Assembly (NCBI GenBank): GCA_025603075.1
Contig: MU626276.1
Coordinates: 117,419 to 181,418 of the forward strand
DNA from: Neoconidiobolus thromboides FSU 785
Taxonomy: Eukaryota > Fungi > Entomophthoromycota
DNA: 64,000 nt
Direction of reading: 5' to 3'
In this document: one piece after another, positions 1,921-31,617 of the stretch
How the letters are laid out: each line of letters begins with the position of its first letter
Position numbering within the stretch: the stretch's first letter is position 1
Notes under the pieces: generated by a model
Databases searched by the model: none
Told to the model about the DNA's origin: nothing
Seen by the model: the letters and a program-made list of their open reading frames with translations, nothing else
Program-made: the position numbers and the translations under genes

Positions 1921-3640
1921 TTAAGGCCCAGATTTAACTACATCTTGTTTTGAATTTAAATTATCTAAAGCAATACGATTTAAAGCATTAATATAAGCCT
2001 TAGCACTAGCTAAAAGTACATCTGGATCAGTTCCTTGTCCACGATAAATTCTTTTATAATCTCCATTAATATTAGATTTCTCTTCATTATCTTCACTTTC
2101 TTCTTTTCCTTTACAAAGTTTAACTGTAACAGCACCTAAAGCATCACTACCTCCAGTAACACCTTTAACATCATAACCCACTAAATAATGTTCAATATCT
2201 GAAAGACGATGAATGGCCTTAAAAATAGCTTCAACTGCGCCAGGTGCTGTACCTGCATCTTCAAATACTTTATAAGTTTGTTGATCATCAATTAAACGTT
2301 GTAAACGAATGGTTGCAGTAGCTGTTGAACCACAAGTAGTAAAACATTGTACATAATCTAAACGATAATGTTCAATATCTAATTGATTAAATTGATCATC
2401 AACAATAGCAATTAAATCCTGATCTGTTACTTTACGTTTAGAATCAGCTAAAGATTTAAAGCGATCAAAAGCAGTTTGAAATTGTTGTTCTGTTAAATTT
2501 TTAAATCCAAGGGTATTGAGATGGGAACGTAAAGCGTTACGTCCAGAATGTTTACCAAGTACTAAAGAATTGGATGGTACACCTACTATTTCTGGTGCTA
2601 TAATTTCATATGTTTGTTGATGTTTTAATACACCATCTTGATGGATACCTGATTCATGAGCAAAGGCATTAGCACCAACAATAGCTTTATTAGCTTGTAC
2701 AGTCATACCAGTTAAATTACTAACCATTTTTGAAATACGATAAATTAATTTAGTGTCAATATGTTGAATCGATACTGGAAATACCGTTGGGTGAGTATAA
2801 ATTGCCATACAAACTTCTTCAAAAGAAGTATTTCCTGCTCTTTCTCCAATACCATTAATTGTTACTTCAACTTGACGAGCACCATTAGCTATACCAGCTA
2901 AAGTATTAGCTGTAGCTAAACCTAAATCATTATGGCAATGAGTGGACCAAATTACATTATTTGAACCCGGTGTATTTTTTATTAAATAATTAATAATTTC
3001 TCCATATTCTTCAGGTGTATTATAACCCACTGTATCAGGTATATTTAAAGTAGTTGCACCAGCTTTAATTACTTCACTTAATACTTGACATAAAAAATCT
3101 TTATCGCTACGACCTGAATCTTCTGGTGAAAATTCTACTTCTTCACATAAAGAACGAGCATGTTTAACTGCTGCTACTGCTCTCTTAATACATTCTTCTC
3201 TATTTATTTTTAATTTATATTTTAAATGAATATCTGATGTAGCTAAAAAGGTATGAATCCTTTTACGTGGAGCTTCTTTGATAGCTTCATAACAACGATC
3301 AATATCTGATATAACTGCTCTTGATAATCCACAGATTACCATAGGTATACCATCTTTTCTACCTTCTGTCAAAGGGCCAACTTGGGTAGCTATTGCTTTT
3401 ACAGCTTGAAAATCACCTTCACTAGCTACTGGAAAACCAGCTTCAAGTACATCAATTCCAAGTTCAGATAAGTTTTTGGCTATTTCTAATTTTTCTTGAA
3501 CACTTAAAGTTACACCTGGGGACTATTTTATGGTTAATATTTGTAATTTTATTTGATAGAGAGTTATTTACCTGTTCCCCATCTCTCAAAGTAGTATCGA
3601 AGAAAATCAATCTATCTTTTGTAGTTTCAACGTTTACCAT
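1921..3640 (-). CDS. LEU4: 2-isopropylmalate synthase, bacterial/plant LeuA type with C-terminal regulatory domain (1 intron)
   Basis: DTTLRDGEQ|SPG joined across one intron; HCHNDLGLATAN, TINGIGERAGN, AHESGIHQDG, LVLGKHSGR. Confidence 0.95.
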
Positions 3641-3656
3641 GGTTATATAACAATAC

Positions 3657-3692
<36 letters not shown>

Positions 3693-3745
3693 AATTAAAG
3701 ATTCTGATTATCTTTTTATATTAATTAAACATTGTTTATGCTTTG

Positions 3746-3754
3746 ATGACTCAT
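3746..3754. promoter_or_regulatory. Perfect Gcn4/CpcA-type site ATGACTCAT upstream of the isopropylmalate synthase gene
   Basis: Exact 9-bp consensus 106 bp from the ATG; second TGAGTCA at 3953-3959. Confidence 0.6.
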
Positions 3755-4107
3755 TTTCGGTAACAAATAAATGAAACAAAAAGTTTGAGAAGTTAATTTT
3801 TTAAAAGCGTGACTATTAAATCTTCTTGAATGTTGATAAAGATTTGATAAATTTTGATAAGATTTAAAAATTATAAGTCATATTTCCTTTTTTGGAAAAA
3901 AGGAATTTTTTCTTTTTATTATCCTATTATTGTCATCGTCATTTATAAATTATGAGTCAATAAGATTGAAAATTGTTAAAGGATACAGTTGATTATTTGA
4001 CATTTGCACTTAAAAATAGTATTATTAAAGGCTATAAAACATAATAAAAAAGTATAAAATGGTAAAGTATATTTGTTTGAAAGATTTATACACTTTGTTA
4101 AATATAT

Positions 4108-4202
4108 CTGGATGTATTTTTCTATTTAAGAGTTTTATTATCAATTTTTTCATTCAAATAACGCTTAAGAAATAAAAAAAGTAATAAAATCAAAACACTC
4201 CC
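4108..4202. mobile_element. MITE copy 1 (degenerate)
   Basis: Same internal sequence as the other copies; flanked by ATAT/ATAT. Confidence 0.7.
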
Positions 4203-4380
4203 ATATGCTTATCATATCTATATTTTATATCTATAACTTATATTCTTAAGTTGATATATAGATTAGATGTATGATAAATAATAACAAATTATAATGATAT
4301 AATACTTTATATCATTATCAATTCAGGTTTAGTATGTTTATTGATATTTAAATGTATTTTATTATTTTATTGTCATATAT

Positions 4381-4478
4381 GAGGATGCATTTTTGTATTT
4401 AAGAATTTTACTGACAATTTTTCTAAAATAGCACTTAAAAAATAGAAAAAGTATAATGAAGTCAAAAAAAACACCCCT
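4381..4478. mobile_element. MITE copy 2
   Basis: GAGGATG...ACACCCCT with conserved core AAGAATTTTACT...GCACTTAAAAAA; flanks ATAT/ATGT. Confidence 0.8.
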
Positions 4479-4724
4479 ATGTATCGTATCCACAGTAATA
4501 TAATAAGAGAATAAATTAAAATAAAATAAGAGTATAAATAAATACTTGTTTTAAGTAAGTGTTATAGCATTTCTTTTTTTAATAACATTTTGCTTAATTT
4601 ATTTTATAAAAAAAACCAGGCTAAAAAATCTATATTTATATTATAATAATTTAGATATTTAAATATCTTTTTATAATATCAAACATTTATATTAATTTTA
4701 TTTAAAAATTATTATTAAAAATAC

Positions 4725-4823
4725 GGGGATGTTTTTTTTGACTTCATTATTTTTTCCATCTTTTAAGCACTGTTTGAGTGGAAAAATTGTTAGTAAAATT
4801 CTTAAATACAAAAATACATCCCC
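4725..4823. mobile_element. MITE copy 3 (opposite orientation to copies 1-2)
   Basis: GGGGATGTTTT...AAAATACATCCCC terminal inverted repeats; flanks ATAC/ATAT. Confidence 0.9.
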
Positions 4824-5341
4824 ATATATCTGTTAATATTTTAACATTTGACTAATTGTATATATCAATATTTTTATAATATCATTGTTTTAATTATAAA
4901 AGTGTTGTTAAAAGTTTATTTAATAAATCATTTGTTTTTATTACTATATAAAAAACAATAAATAAAACAAAAAAGATCTTTTTATATTATTTCTAATAAC
5001 CTAATTGCTTAAATTTGGCTTCTTTAGATAAATTTTAATTTAAAAAATTTAAAAAATTTAAAAATAGGAATAAAATATGGCTGTTATTAATAAACTCTAT
5101 CTAAACAGTAAAAAAACTAATAAATAAAAACAATGGACTAAAAGATAATATTAAACTTATTAGCCAAAATATTTAATTAGTATACCCACATTTTATTTAG
5201 GATAATTTGCTTATAAGCAAACAAATTAAGACTCATATTATGTCATAGCTTCCCCCAAACTCCCATGAAAACTCAATTCCTTGGAAAGAAATTCCGAAAT
5301 CGAATTAAAAATAAGATTGAGTGGCTATGATTTAAAATAAA

Positions 5342-5463
5342 CCAATAAATTTCGATTAACAAAGTTCACAATTTTGCAGAACTTAACAAATCCAAACCAA
5401 TAAAAGAGTGACTTTATTTTTAAGCAAAAACAAGAATAAAAAAAGGTATGGAATTAAGCCAAT
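5342..5463 (+). promoter_or_regulatory. Three CCAAT boxes upstream of KGD1
   Basis: CCAAT at 5342, 5397 and 5459; yeast KGD1 is controlled by the CCAAT-binding HAP complex. Confidence 0.45.
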
Positions 5464-5584
5464 AATATAAAGTATTAGTTAATCAGATAATTTAGTATTT
5501 AACGTGTAATAGGGTAATTTTTAAAAATTTATATTTAATGGATAATACCTTTAACCAAAACATCTTAGATTTTAATCAACTATA

Positions 5585-8500
5585 ATGTCGGGGTATACAA
5601 AATTAGCCTCTCTTGCCTTTAAGGCAAATATTCGATCTATACCTAGATCCCGTTTTATTAATGTTTGTTCAAGTAAATTCCAAACTTATACCAAAGTACA
5701 AGCCAAAAATACCACCAGTGACCTTTTTATGGACGGAACAAGTGCTGTGTATGTTGAAGAAATGTACAACTCATGGAGAAATGATCCAAACTCGGTTCAT
5801 CTTTCTTGGCAAATTTACTTTAAAAATATGTCTAATGGTCAATCACCTTCCGCTTCTTATTCAGCCCCACCAACACTTGTATCTACTAGTTCAGTAGGAA
5901 ATTTACCACTCGGTGCTACTTCATCTTCTCCAGAAGTTGTAGATCATTTGAAAATCCAATTACTTGTTAGAGCTTATCAAGTTCGTGGTCATCATCTTGC
6001 TAAACTTGACCCTCTAGGCATTTTATCTCCTACTTTAGATACTCCAATACCTAAAGAATTAGAACTTTCTTATTATAATTTTACTGAACAAGATTTAAAC
6101 AGAGAATTTAATCTTGGTCCAGGAATATTGCCAGGTTTCATGAATGAAAAAACCACTTTAACTTTAAAACAAATCGTAGAACATCTTAAAAATATTTACT
6201 GTATTATTTATAATCCTATTTTTTGTTAATATATTAATCATTTTTTTTAACTAGGTTCATCTATCGGATATGAATATCAACATATTCCAGATAAAACTCA
6301 ATGCGATTGGTTAAGAGAACGTATTGAAACCCCAAAACCATTTGAATTTTCAGTTGAAGATAAAAAAATGATACTTGATAGATTAGTTTGGTCTGATTCT
6401 TTTGAAAGATTTGTTGCAAGCAAATATGTTAGTGAAAAACGTTTTGGGTTAGAAGGTTGTGAAGCTTTAATTCCTGGTATGAAAGCAATGGTAATATATT
6501 ATTATAATAATAAAATAAAAATTTTAATGTATTAGATTGATCAAGCTGCTGACCTTGGAACTGAATCTTTTGTGATTGGTATGGCTCATCGTGGTCGTTT
6601 AAATGTTTTAAGTAACGTTGTTCGTAAACCAAATGAATCCATTTTCTGTGAATTCAGCGGTTCATTAGACCCCTCTGTAGAAGGTTCTGGTGATGTTAAA
6701 TACCATCTTGGTATGAATTATGTCCGTCCAACTCCTTCTGGAAAGAGAGTCCATCTTTCCTTAGTCGCCAATCCATCCCATCTTGAAGCTGTTAATCCAG
6801 TTGTTCTCGGTAAAACCAGAGCTATTCAATTTTATAGTGGTGATTTAGAAGAACACAAACGTAGTGTAGGTGTTTTAATTCATGGTGATGCTGCTTTTGC
6901 AGCTCAAGGTGTTGTTTATGAAACTTTAGGTTTCCATGAACTTCCATCATATACTGTTGGTGGTACAATTCATATAGTCATTAATAATCAAATCGGTTTT
7001 ACAACTGATCCACGTTATTCTCGTTCTACTCCATATTGTACTGATATCGCTAAATCTATCAATGCACCAATTTTCCATGTTAATGGTGATGATGTTGAAG
7101 CAGTCACATTTGTTTGTAAATTAGCAGCCGATTTCCGTCAAACTTTCAAGAAGGATGTTGTTATTGATATTGTATGTTATCGTAAATATGGCCATAATGA
7201 AGTTGATCAGCCCAGTTTCACTCAACCAAGAATGTACAAAACCATTGCTAAACAAAAGCCAGTTTTAGAAAAATATATTGAGAAACTTTTAAGTGAAAAA
7301 ACTTTTGATGAAACCTTTGTAAAGGAAAATAAAGAAAAGGTATGGAAAACTTTAGAAGAAAGTTACGCTAAGAGTAAAGATTATAAGCCAACAAGTCGTG
7401 AATGGCTATCAAGCTCATGGGAAGGCTTCAAATCCCCTAGTGAATTAGCTGTAGAAATTGCACCTGCTCATCCTACTGGTGCTTCTTTACATTCTTTACG
7501 TCAAGTTGGAAAAGCCATTACAACTATTCCTTCTACTTTTAAAGCTCATAACGTTATTAAAAAAATTATTGGTGCACGTCAAAAGACCATTGAAGAAGAA
7601 TCAAACATTGACTGGCCAACAGCTGAAGCACTTGCCTTTGGTACCCTTGTTAATGAAGGAACACACGTTAGATTAAGTGGTCAAGATGTTGAACGTGGAA
7701 CTTTCTCACATAGACATGCTGTCATCCATGATCAAAACGATGAATCCACTTATACCTCTTTATCTAAAATTTCACCAACACAAGCACAATTTACTGTCTG
7801 TAACTCCTCTTTATCAGAATTCGGAACTTTAGGTTTCGAACTTGGTTATTCTTTAGTTAACCCTAATGCTTTAGTTATGTGGGAAGCCCAATTTGGTGAT
7901 TTCGCAAATAATGCCCAATGTATCATTGATCAATTTATTGCTTCAGGTGAAAAGAAATGGTTACAACGTACTGGTTTAACTCTTCTCCTCCCTCATGGTT
8001 ATGATGGCCAAGGTCCAGAACATTCAAGTGGACGTTTAGAACGTTTCCTTCAATTAATTGATGAACATCCTTATAAATTCCCAGAAAATATGGATCGTCA
8101 ACATCAAGATTGTAACATGCAAATTGTTTACTGTACTACTCCAGCCAATTACTTCCATGCTTTACGTCGTCAAATACATCGTGATTTCCGTAAGCCTTTG
8201 ATCTGTTTCAATTCCAAGAATCTTCTTCGTCATCCTTTGGTAAGATCTGAAATGTCTGAAATGTCTGATGGTACTCACTTCCAACGTGCTATTCCAGAAA
8301 CATCTAAAGATTTAGTTGCTGATGATAAGATTCGTACCCATGTTTTATGTTCTGGTCAAGTTTATTATACTCTCTTGAAAGCTAGGGAACAGAACAATGT
8401 TAACGATGTTGCTATTACTCGTATTGAACAAATAACTCCATTCCCGTTCGATTTAGTCAAAGAATATTCTGATAAATACCCTAATGCCGAAATTACTTGG

Positions 8501-26846: not shown

Positions 26847-29800
26847 TCAAGAATGGGAATTAGAAGGTGGGTTGGGTGGTAACTGAGGGTTAGAAGTGTC
26901 GGGTGCAGGATGAATAGTTGGTTGATTAGAACTCCTTTGCAATTGCTGTTGTTGCAACTGTTGTCTTTGTTGTAATTGTTGCTGTAGGATATGATTCGCT
27001 TGAATCTGCTGTTGCTGTAAAAATTGGTTTGCCATAGCTGCTTGTTGTGCCATCAACTGTTGATTATAAGGAATTCGCATTGGGTTTTGTCTTGGTGTTG
27101 AAGTGTTACCATTAAATGCAACGAATTGCATTGGGTGTGGTGAATTAATATTAGTTTGTGAGGGAGGTGCTGGGGTCGGGGTTTGATTGGGTAAAATGGG
27201 AGTAGCACTTGCATTTGTAACGTTGTGTGGAGATTCCGCTTGTCCAGCTTTGCCAGCCCCCTTTTTCTTCGATCCTTTCTTCCCTTTAGTAGCCCGTTGC
27301 TTAGTTTGTTTTGCTGGTTGACCTCCTTGCGTGGTCTATAATAGATAAGTAAACTCATTATAAAAATATATTAAAATGTTACAGGTTGGGTTGGAGCCGA
27401 AGCTACAGGGGTAGCTGTAGTTGTTCCATCTGAAATAAATATTAATATTAAATTTTTACTTAAATGATTTACTATTATTCATAGAAATTGGCATTCTGTT
27501 ACGAAACATAGGATTCTGCATTTGTGCCAGTTGATTTAAGGTTGCTTGGTTAAGCTGCATAGGATTAATATTATTTGGATAATTACCACTTCCGGGTCTG
27601 ATCATCCCGTCTTGAATTTGTTGTATTAATCTCCTTTGTGCTTCTGCTAATATTCTAGGATCTCCCGGATTGGCCTGTAAATTATTATTAAAAGGTGTCT
27701 AGAAAGTATTTTATTAACTCACTTGCTGGCCACTATTTGAACTATGTGGTAATTGTGTATTCTGTATATTATTTATCATTGAATTGTGCTGCATTTGCAA
27801 TGCTCTCTGATATAATATAGCATTCTGAGTATTTTGCATATGCGTAGCTAAAGCAATACCTTCCGGAGAGTTCAAATTGAGCTGATTCATATTAATGCTT
27901 GGCCTCAAATTATTTAATCCTTGAGGTAATCTTCCTCCATTTCTAGCAGCAGCAGCGGCTTGTGCAAACAAAGCAGGATTTGAAAGAATATTTGGTGGTA
28001 TATATCCAAGTGCTGCATATTGAGATGGATGTAGACCTTGCGGGATATTTGGTTGGATGATGTTATTATTTCCATTTGTTTGACCAGCCTGATAGTGTTC
28101 AGCAATGATTCTAGCCGCATTACTAGCTCTAGCCAAAGGAATGTTCCCAAGTGCATTCCGCATAGCATTTGGAATATTTTGGAAGTTTGTAGGAAACCCA
28201 GGCCTTAATACAGGATAAGGCCGCCCACCAATTGTATTCGGTCTTGAAATTGCGATAGGCGGTTGTCCTGGTTGGATTTGAGGTTGAACCTATAAAGATG
28301 TGTAAACAAATAAATACTAGTACAAAGCAACGATAAATAATTACTTGTTGAGTACTTTCTTCTTTTTGATCCATCCTTCTTTTAGATATTGGATCCTCGA
28401 GTACTTTAGCTTTTATCAAATCAATCGGATTTATAAAAGAAAGCTGAGTACTAGAAGATGGAGCATCAGACATAATCCCAGATGTATTATGTGAGTTCGC
28501 TGATAGTCGATTTTGTTAGATTAATTTATATTGCTAAACTGTAATTACCTGTATGCGTGTCTTTCTTTTTCATGGACTTCTTCTTTACAGTTTCAAATGC
28601 GGCAAACCTTGAAGAGGTACGTTTCTTTTCATCATGTGCATTATTTGTATTATTTATCAAATTTAAAGAATTAGAGTTATTATGATCATTGCTCTGAGCA
28701 GCTGAATTGGTTGGTGATGTATTTGAAATAAAAGACCATCTTTGAGAACAATCTTGAGCTTTTCTTTTTTGTGATGAGTATAAATTTGAATTATTGTTAA
28801 GCAAAGTAGCTAAAAGATCCCAATTGAAAGAAAGTTCTGAAGCCCTTTTTCTTATGAAATTATCCTCAATTGAATTCCATGATGGTTCAAATTTATTTGA
28901 TTTGATATTTGCTGCATTCTCTTTCGTAGTTAATGTGGCAGCATTTGTTCGTGTTTTGTTTAAAAGTACTATTTTGTTATTATATAATAAATAAACTATT
29001 TAGTATTAACACTTACATGGTAAATCTGAAAATGCTTGGAAATCCAGATTGGAATAGTAAGTTGAAGAATCAAATGGCAAATCATTTATAAAAGGAGCAG
29101 ATAAACTTGAATTGGGAATTTCATCTTGAAAAATAACAAAAGTATCTACCAGCCTTTGAATCGGAACAATCGAACCATGCTCTATTATATCTTGATAATT
29201 CTCAGTGTTAAGGTTGTCAAGTGTATATGTGAGCATATTTTCATAAAATGGATTATTTTCAGTTTCACCTGCTATTGATTCAGATTTTAAAGAAATATCG
29301 AAAATGCTTGAAGGGATCATGTCAACTTAATAAAGTTAAAATATATAAGCGAATAAGCGAATTAAGTTACCATTAGTATCTTTTTTCCTAACATTTACAG
29401 TACCATCATTTTTGAAAAATGTTTTTGTTACATGAAGTGATTTATCAGAAGCATTATGCCAATCTAAAACAGCGTCTGCTATCGTTTTGGCCATAGAAAC
29501 CTTGTACTTTTTTTCTTCAACAAAATCTGCTTGCATCCACATCTAAAAACAATGTCAAAATCTAATAATTTAGTACAAACAGCAATCTTACAGCTTCATC
29601 TAGAAGATTATCCCAATGAGTTTTCGGCCTTTGTATGGTAGGTTGTCGACTAAATTGCTTATAACTCCACTCGTTCTTTGCAGCCAAATTTTCAATTTTT
29701 TCATAAAGCTCACAAATTCTAGAATCGGAATCTTGTACCTATTAATATATTATAAGCATTCATACTTCAAAAGCATTAATATCTCATGGTAAGTTTAATA

Positions 29801-30934
29801 CCTTCCAATCGTCAGTTGATAATGCTCGTGTAGAACTGGCTACTTGTATATTTAATGGTTTAGATACAACTTTAGAAACGACCTCTTTCAAATCAAAGGA
29901 ACGCTGGCTCATATGTGCTTTATTTATTTTGTTTATCACGTCTTTGGCTAAAGACGCTTCTGGAAGTTCATCCAAGTTTTCTTGTGTCTTACCAATACTA
30001 AAGGGCATAGATCTTGGTTTGATATAGGATTTAGAATGAAATTGGAGAGACTAACATAAGTTTTAATATGTAATCTGTTTTTGAAAAAATTATAATACCT
30101 CAAACAACTCCCTCGCTTTTTTTAAGTAGTTTTCTCTAATACTGCCTTTACTGTACTCGTCTTCAGTGTTATCACCTAGAATTTCTTAACATTATATGTT
30201 GTTTAATATTAGATTTACGTAATTTTTAAATAGCAACATACCCTAAATTAGGTTAGATAAAATAATCAGTAACAAAACTTAACTTACTGTATTCGCTTTT
30301 TCTTTAATGAATGAATTTGAGTTATCACTAACAAGTAATTAGAATTAAACAGACATTGGATCAAGCTTAAATACCTGTATGTACCCGATTCTTCGAATTT
30401 GAGAGGCATAGAGGTCCTTCTTCTCTGAAAATTGTTTTTTTTAAAGATGGAAAAATGGTCTGGACTATGGGTTTTTGTAGCTAAAGTGTTGTTAGTATTG
30501 ATATGAATAAAGCAAGTAATAAGGTATACAAATTATCTCATCTTGTAATCCCAGAATATTTGAATCCTTACTTGAATTAGGATCACTCTCGTTTCCATTT
30601 CCGTTTTCATGATCATTAATTAATACTGATTCATCAACAGTTAACTCATCTTATAATTTTAAAAAAATATTATCCATTGTTTAAATATTATCTACCTGAC
30701 ATATAAGACTCGTCCAATTTTTCAACTATAGCTGAAGATGCATTTGGTGACTTGATTAATGTCAAATATTTTGGATTAAACTCATTTTGCGCTTCAGAAA
30801 TATCAAAATTAAAAGCTTCCTCAGACTTTAAACCTGGTTTAAGTTTTCTATCAATTTTTAGTTTTAATAATGAAAAATAATTTAAAATACTCTAATTTGT
30901 TTATTTCAAAAAATGATGCTTCTTCTTTATACAT
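26847..30934 (-). CDS. EAF1: NuA4 scaffold Eaf1 (HSA + SANT + Gln-rich tail), many exons; 5' end uncertain
   Basis: STRALSTDDW, WSYKQ...KTHWDNLLDEA|MWMQADFVEEKKYK (HSA), WNSIEDNFI...NWDLLA...CSQRW (SANT); all exons chain in frame if a 1-nt exon at 30242 is allowed. Confidence 0.88.
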
Positions 30935-31617
30935 AACAGTCTAAGGGAGTGATAAATAATTGAACTTGAAATTTAACCGCTATACTTTTAAGTTTAGCGT
31001 TTATAGCTATGTGAAATAACCAAAGCTGTTCAGTTTGTTATTAAAGGGATGTATAAGTAAATAAAAATTATATAAAATAATATCCTTGGTATGAAGGTGT
31101 GACTATATAGCTGGGACTTTATTATATGTCCTTTGAAATTTTAATCCCTTTTCAATCCTTTGTCACTTCAAATCGTAACTTTTTTGCAGTCGATTTCTAG
31201 CAAAAATTAATCTCAATCCTGTCCTTAAATTTTTGAAGTTTATCGCAAAATTCAATTTTTGAATTTAACTTTAGATGCTCAGAATAATTATTATAGAAGC
31301 ATATGAATTTTTGTATAAAATGAAATGAATATAACCTTACACTATACTTTTTATCTATATAATTTAATCCTTTATATTTGACCTTCGAATAATGTAAACC
31401 TTTTTTCAATATCCACACTTTATATATTCTCATACTTTAACTATAATAGATAGAAAAATGATTTGGATGTTTTTACCATAATGAAAATATATGAAAAAAT
31501 ATCATTTGAATAATCTTAAAGGTAGTTCTATAAATAAGCCACTTTTTATCATTTATTATTAACATGTTATAAATTTTGAATATAGTTTTAAATATAACAA
31601 ATTATTTGACATTATAT

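Follow-up and report, generated by a model that had tools for sequence, protein, structure and literature searches.

The guanine at position 30242 of the stretch of Neoconidiobolus thromboides DNA analysed here (64,000 nucleotides, referred to as the window) is, at a probability of roughly 0.9, a genuine one-nucleotide exon of the gene for EAF1, the NuA4 scaffold. The mRNA of this gene holds exactly one base beyond any single canonical excision of its pre-mRNA, the reading frame depends on that additional base, and a pair of introns abutting a lone G, the second of them ending at either of two acceptors, is the sole canonical solution.

The host gene was delineated from RNA joints and the assembled open reading frame, and was identified by its domain and structure matches:

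27400..30934 (extent of the reads placed), minus strand: EAF1-like gene, resting on RNA joints, the assembled open reading frame, a Pfam HSA match and a solved-structure match.

The ATG occupies 30934-30932, with a stop codon three codons upstream, and the coding sequence continues below 27400; between 27400 and 30934 the gene is interrupted by 15 GT-AG introns, including the two that abut. An HSA domain is encoded around 29738-29371 (Pfam HSA, 1e-13), the best solved-structure match is EAF1 itself (7zvw_E, 1.3e-11), and a SANT-like exon matches orthologues, including one with Myb_DNA-bind_6. An ATPase domain was not detected among the 942 assembled residues. An HSA domain followed by a SANT/Myb-like segment, without a Snf2 ATPase, justifies the name EAF1/Vid21 (NuA4 scaffold subunit), under which the gene had been entered in the original prediction. 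The public annotation of GCA_025603075.1 splits the RNA-supported gene (27053-30934, minus strand) into three models:

30702-30492, minus strand: public model of 54 aa, which reads into an intron.
30008-27647, minus strand: public model of 666 aa (K502DRAFT_79209), which ends in a retained intron.
27605-27053, minus strand: public model of 150 aa.

The interval 30491-30009, including the one-base exon, is without any public model, and the first coding exons (30934-30696) are absent as well. An explicit model of abutting introns would be needed in gene finders to avoid such splitting.

The site itself is organised on the minus strand as follows:

30288..30327, minus strand: upstream exon of 40 nt, ending …SDNSNSFIKEKANT in phase 0 after ACA; delimited by RNA joints from 30327 to 30375 and to 30287 in runs X1, X2 and X4, and by the frame.
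30243..30287, minus strand: intron 1, 45 nt, GTAAGT…TTTAG; read from the sequence, with a length inside the gene's range of 43-63 nt, and part of the sole canonical solution.
30252..30256, minus strand: CTAAC motif of intron 1, branch-point-like by its sequence and of the type seen in confirmed introns, with a putative function as branch site.
30242, minus strand: one-nucleotide exon G; extra G in the X1, X2 and X4 contigs, needed for an open frame, unique canonical solution.
30185..30241, minus strand: intron 2 in its major form, 57 nt, GTATGT…GTTAAG; from the joint between 30184 and 30287 (102 nt) and from the enumeration.
30176..30184, minus strand: 9-nt segment AAATTCTAG; from the joint between 30175 and 30287 and from the translations.
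30099..30175, minus strand: core of the downstream exon, …DNTEDEYSKGSIRENYLKKARELFE; from the joints between 30050 and 30099 and between 30175 or 30184 and 30287, and from the frame.

The G lies directly after an AG and directly before a GT, in TTTAG/G/GTATGT at 30247-30236. The putative branch A of intron 1 would be 30253, 10 nt from the 3' end of that intron, and a CTAAT branch-like motif of intron 2 is found at 30212-30208. Intron 2 carries two AG acceptors, GTTAAG ending at 30185 and TTCTAG ending at 30176; the segment AAATTCTAG between these two alternative 3' splice sites, 9 nt apart, is exonic in the major isoform, to which it adds Glu-Ile-Leu, and intronic in the minor one, in which intron 2 extends to 66 nt (30241-30176). 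In the major isoform, intron 2 ends at the first AG past its likely branch site, as introns ordinarily do. Depending on the acceptor, G30242 becomes base 1 of GAA (Glu) in the major isoform or of GGT (Gly) in the minor one. A search of Rfam with 29900-30500 returned no match, and thus no intron-hosted RNA. The exons that flank the abutting introns start similarly on the minus strand, with TAG/TGATAAC (30321-30327) and TAG/G-TGATAAC (30168-30174), encoding S-D-N-S and G-D-N-T respectively, and these like starts could be the trace of a small duplication or a product of chance.

Contigs from three RNA runs belonging to two studies (X1 and X4 to one, X2 to the other) were placed on 27400-31400. 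The data are assembled Logan contigs (31-letter words), and the shorter side of a joint comprises 25-35 letters. The major joint, between 30184 and 30287, skips 102 nt and is present in all three runs, at depths of 44.5 in X1, 403.6 in X2 and 37.6 in X4. The minor joint, between 30175 and 30287, skips 111 nt and was found in X2 only, at a depth of 52 against 403.6 for the major one (about 11% of the X2 depth); the X1 and X4 assemblies lack it. With either joint, one additional G and no more remains between ...AATACA and the downstream exon. The major mRNA thus runs ACA-G-AAATTC (...AATACA-G-AAATTCTAGGTGAT) and encodes KANT-EIL-GDNTEDEY, and the minor mRNA runs ACA-G-GTGAT (...AATACA-G-GTGATAAC) and encodes KANT-GDNTEDEY, both in frame. 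The junction originally foreseen, KANT-G-DNTED with a 66-nt second intron, therefore exists in X2, but as the minor form, the major acceptor being the AG at 30186-30185; the remainder of the predicted layout, namely the coordinates, lengths and phases within 30176-30287 and a lone G at 30242 between abutting introns, is borne out by the sequence, the frame and the RNA contigs. The upstream exon boundaries proposed at 30649/30530, 30480/30375 and 30327 likewise coincide with RNA joints. The 13 other introns of the gene are all removed in the RNA contigs, and all 13 are GT-AG introns of 43-63 nt.

The joints described here are those listed for the region, and one more exists within 27400-31400; it could stem from an alternatively or partly spliced form in any part of the gene. 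Neither a partly spliced intermediate nor a separate lariat was seen among the assembled contigs, and the DNA run X12 shows no joint at the site. The depth bins sum overlapping contigs and are unusable as a measure of intron retention. One X4 contig (depth 11) carries an A at the exon boundary beside the 49-nt intron (30479-30530), which is either a strain variant or a slightly shifted junction.

The reading frame and the mRNA sequences together leave little freedom in how the intervening stretch can be removed. The upstream exons leave phase 0 after ACA, one base short of what the downstream exon requires. With that base, and only with it, the frame stays open from the ATG at 30934 through the HSA domain. 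Stop codons result, as had been predicted, if the G is skipped, if either intron is retained, or if a 24-nt exon delimited by the internal GTAAAT is used. Two alternatives are in frame on paper, a GTTAAG donor at 30283 (giving a single 108-nt intron, a joint that had been named in advance as counter-evidence) and an acceptor at 30156, which the original prediction had overlooked; among the joints listed there is none for either of these or for a form without the G, in contigs that attest presence rather than absence. All GT-AG, GC-AG and AT-AC excisions of the pre-mRNA 30327-30099, together with all ordered pairs of such excisions, were then enumerated. No single GT-AG, GC-AG or AT-AC excision in this exhaustive set yields either mRNA, and no nested canonical solution was encountered in 30327-30099. 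The sole two-step canonical solutions are removal of 30287-30243 together with 30241-30185 for the major mRNA or with 30241-30176 for the minor one, in either order.

The two sub-introns so defined are ordinary members of the intron population of this gene. Their lengths (45 nt, and 57 or 66 nt) fall within or just above the span of 43-63 nt covered by the 13 confirmed introns, their donors (GTAAGT and GTATGT) and 3' ends (TAG and AAG) match types found among these, and in both of them a CTAAC or CTAAT motif precedes the 3' end by 10-33 nt; CTAAC is likewise present in, for example, the confirmed introns 28548-28500 and 30529-30481. The central motif, AGGGTAWGT, occurs once on both strands of the 64-kb window (128 kb) against 0.59 occurrences expected. 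Within the window, AG-G-GTATGT with a preceding CTAAC is unique to this site, and the chance of finding AGGGTAWGT at an intron-compatible position here is about 1e-4, reckoned over the approximately 20-30 positions in the skipped stretch that leave both halves at least 40 nt long. The arrangement at the site exceeds chance.

One alternative is a single intron of 102 or 111 nt, cut at its 5' end one base past the GT (ACAG/UAAGUU…) and joined to two ordinary AG acceptors, which would make a UA-AG intron and reduce the internal AG-G-GTATGT to a coincidence. This is the aligner's own placement of both joints, whose ends read CT..TA on the plus strand (TA..AG on the minus strand), and one odd donor would account for both isoforms at once. 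The joints have a two-letter ambiguity, and no shift of the cut within it makes them canonical. Nevertheless, none of the 13 confirmed introns starts with anything other than GT and none is longer than 63 nt, so that a single intron of 102 or 111 nt would far exceed any other intron of the gene. A perfect CTAAC…AG-G-GTATGT would moreover have to lie in mid-stretch at intron-sized distances by an accident of the small probability given above. Both catalytic steps of splicing depend on a G at position +1 of the intron, and introns with UA-AG ends are not, to our knowledge, a recognised class. Such a cut is improbable as the source of the extra G.

A different possibility, that the extra G is an artefact, either of an error in the GGG run of the genome sequence or of contig assembly or alignment, could draw on the fact that the RNA evidence consists of Logan contigs only, with the short joint sides described above. 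Three RNA runs belonging to two studies show the same junction, however, the added base is precisely the one that the frame requires, and three DNA runs agree with the window. All sampled words of 30050-30400 (100%) are present in the DNA runs X10 and X11 and 93% in a third DNA run. The X12 contigs show 0 differences over 30018-30267 and 1 over 30240-30757, and the public assembly of N. thromboides FSU 785 (GCA_025603075.1 MU626276.1) agrees with the window at every base. The DNA runs exclude an indel in the GGG run, and likewise one in the A/T runs, the homopolymer error that had been named beforehand as a way for the one-base exon to fail; an artefact of any kind is very improbable.

In other parts of the gene X12 differs from the window by many base changes. 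Two X12 contigs cover 28441-28736, one identical to the window and the other with 20 differences in 296 nt, and a similar mixture occurs in the X1 and X4 RNA at 29152-29253 (within a region noted as 29152-29408). The X12 differences are overwhelmingly transitions, about 112 as compared to 13 transversions. This suggests two diverged haplotypes or strains in the samples.

The two-letter ambiguity of the joints formally accommodates one further shift, a single intron with the GT donor at 30287 that is cut one base before the G of the AG at both acceptors, giving GT-AA and GT-TA introns. This would call for two different non-canonical 3' ends, with no like among the 13 confirmed introns, and it leaves the internal splice signals unexplained, making it barely credible. 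Both shifted-cut explanations require termini that the spliceosome does not normally use, and even taken together they are unlikely.

Spliceosomal twin introns (stwintrons), in which the donor, branch site or acceptor of an external intron is split by an internal one, are known in filamentous fungi (PMC5639578, PMC5587772) and share with the EAF1 site two consecutive splicing reactions in one intervening region. A stwintron, in which removal of the internal intron would complete the splice signal of the external intron and everything would be removed, might explain two sets of splice signals in one stretch, but each intron here possesses its full set of signals prior to splicing, one base is left in the mRNA and the enumeration on the read junctions yields no nested solution, which refutes it and leaves it next to no probability.

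The explanation preferred here is that two ordinary U2-type GT-AG introns abut G30242, the first of 45 nt (30287-30243) and the second of 57 nt (30241-30185) or alternatively 66 nt. Intron 1 begins with a G and intron 2 ends with one, and the mRNA alone is therefore ambiguous as to the source of the retained G; the canonical two-step solution would assign it to 30242. In AG/G/GTATGT the acceptor of intron 1 overlaps the donor of intron 2, and because of this overlap their simultaneous recognition is implausible, so that the introns are probably removed one after the other, by intron definition. Either order gives an identical product in the enumeration. If intron 1 were removed first, as had been proposed, the ligation would create a consensus CAG/GTATGT donor for intron 2.

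Such a pathway would resemble recursive splicing, apart from the single base that remains. Zero-length ratchet points (AG/GT) for recursive splicing have been described in Drosophila and vertebrates, and there, too, an acceptor is immediately followed by a donor that serves in a second reaction once the first ligation has taken place; the corresponding ligated sequence here would be CAG/GTATGT. Ratchet points leave no base and lie within very long introns, whereas the EAF1 site keeps one base between introns of about 50 nt. A zero-length recursive splice site was considered and rejected for 30242, where one G stands between AG and GT and is retained.

One-nucleotide exons are rare but have been published in several eukaryotes, and the EAF1 site is a further case. 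An identical AG/G/GT layout characterises the one-nucleotide exon of CYP621A from Fusarium (Nelson & Syed 2026; PMC12940212). As in EAF1, short fungal GT-AG introns flank a G on both sides, the whole stretch between the neighbouring exons is about double a typical intron in length, and the single base reconciles the phases, is supported by RNA-seq and was missed by automatic annotation (PMC12940212). The base in CYP621A belongs to the strongly conserved PKG motif of the P450 and is kept in at least 20 orthologues (PMC12940212), whereas that of EAF1 lies in a poorly conserved N-terminal region, is followed by an intron with two acceptors and occurs in an early-diverging entomophthoralean host. 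APC11 from Arabidopsis contains a constitutive one-nucleotide exon, A333, flanked by GT-AG introns; its authors suggested that these are spliced sequentially, by intron definition and in a recursive-like way (Guo & Liu 2015; PMC4674806). The arrangement between GT-AG introns and the sequential intron-definition model are common to both genes, but the APC11 exon is an A whose source was proven by exchanging it (A>T and A>G were recovered in cDNA), and its flanking introns are longer and those of a plant (PMC4674806). A long-read annotation of Coprinopsis cinerea lists 13 one-nucleotide exons in 13 genes, demonstrating that such exons recur in a fungal genome of short introns and that their omission breaks gene models, as in EAF1; this organism is a basidiomycete, and the list is genome-wide, without analysis of the individual sites and without a report of EAF1 (PMC12230235).

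Among relatives, an EAF1 orthologue was identified in Entomophthora muscae (GCA_014839935.2; model at 3001-6591 of locus L002). It shares the intron positions around the HSA domain, where three consecutive exons measure 246, 147 and 172 nt as compared to 249, 147 and 172 nt in N. thromboides. The E. muscae introns are even shorter, at 32-60 nt, with one other of 114 nt. Its N-terminal region is unalignable with that of N. thromboides, and in the public model no intron interrupts the corresponding exon of 210 nt; the N-terminal region of a further locus (L003; 42% G+C) cannot be aligned either. Searches for homologous proteins with the gene's own model (P0001), whole or as residues 1-200, returned only the query itself, a search with the 83-aa exon returned nothing, and a search of representative proteins returned distant relatives only. 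The one-base exon sits in a poorly conserved, fast-evolving N-terminal part of EAF1, and the region around it is probably disordered.

The finding extends RNA-supported one-nucleotide exons to an early-diverging lineage, the Entomophthoromycotina, and to a core chromatin gene. Its additional interest is modest and lies in this lineage, in the poor conservation of the region that carries the exon and in the coupling of the exon to an alternative acceptor. With their overlapping splice sites, the abutting introns of EAF1 offer a clean natural substrate for asking in which order such introns are removed. A more speculative proposal, tentative at this stage and rather doubtful, is that N. thromboides uses ultra-short exons of 1-5 nt unusually often and that one-nucleotide exons can arise and persist nearly neutrally. 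If this were true, one-nucleotide exons would not only serve as a rescue of the frame inside constrained motifs but could also come about, for example, through the gain of an intron beside an existing one, and N. thromboides would constitute a natural system for the obligatorily sequential splicing of abutting introns.
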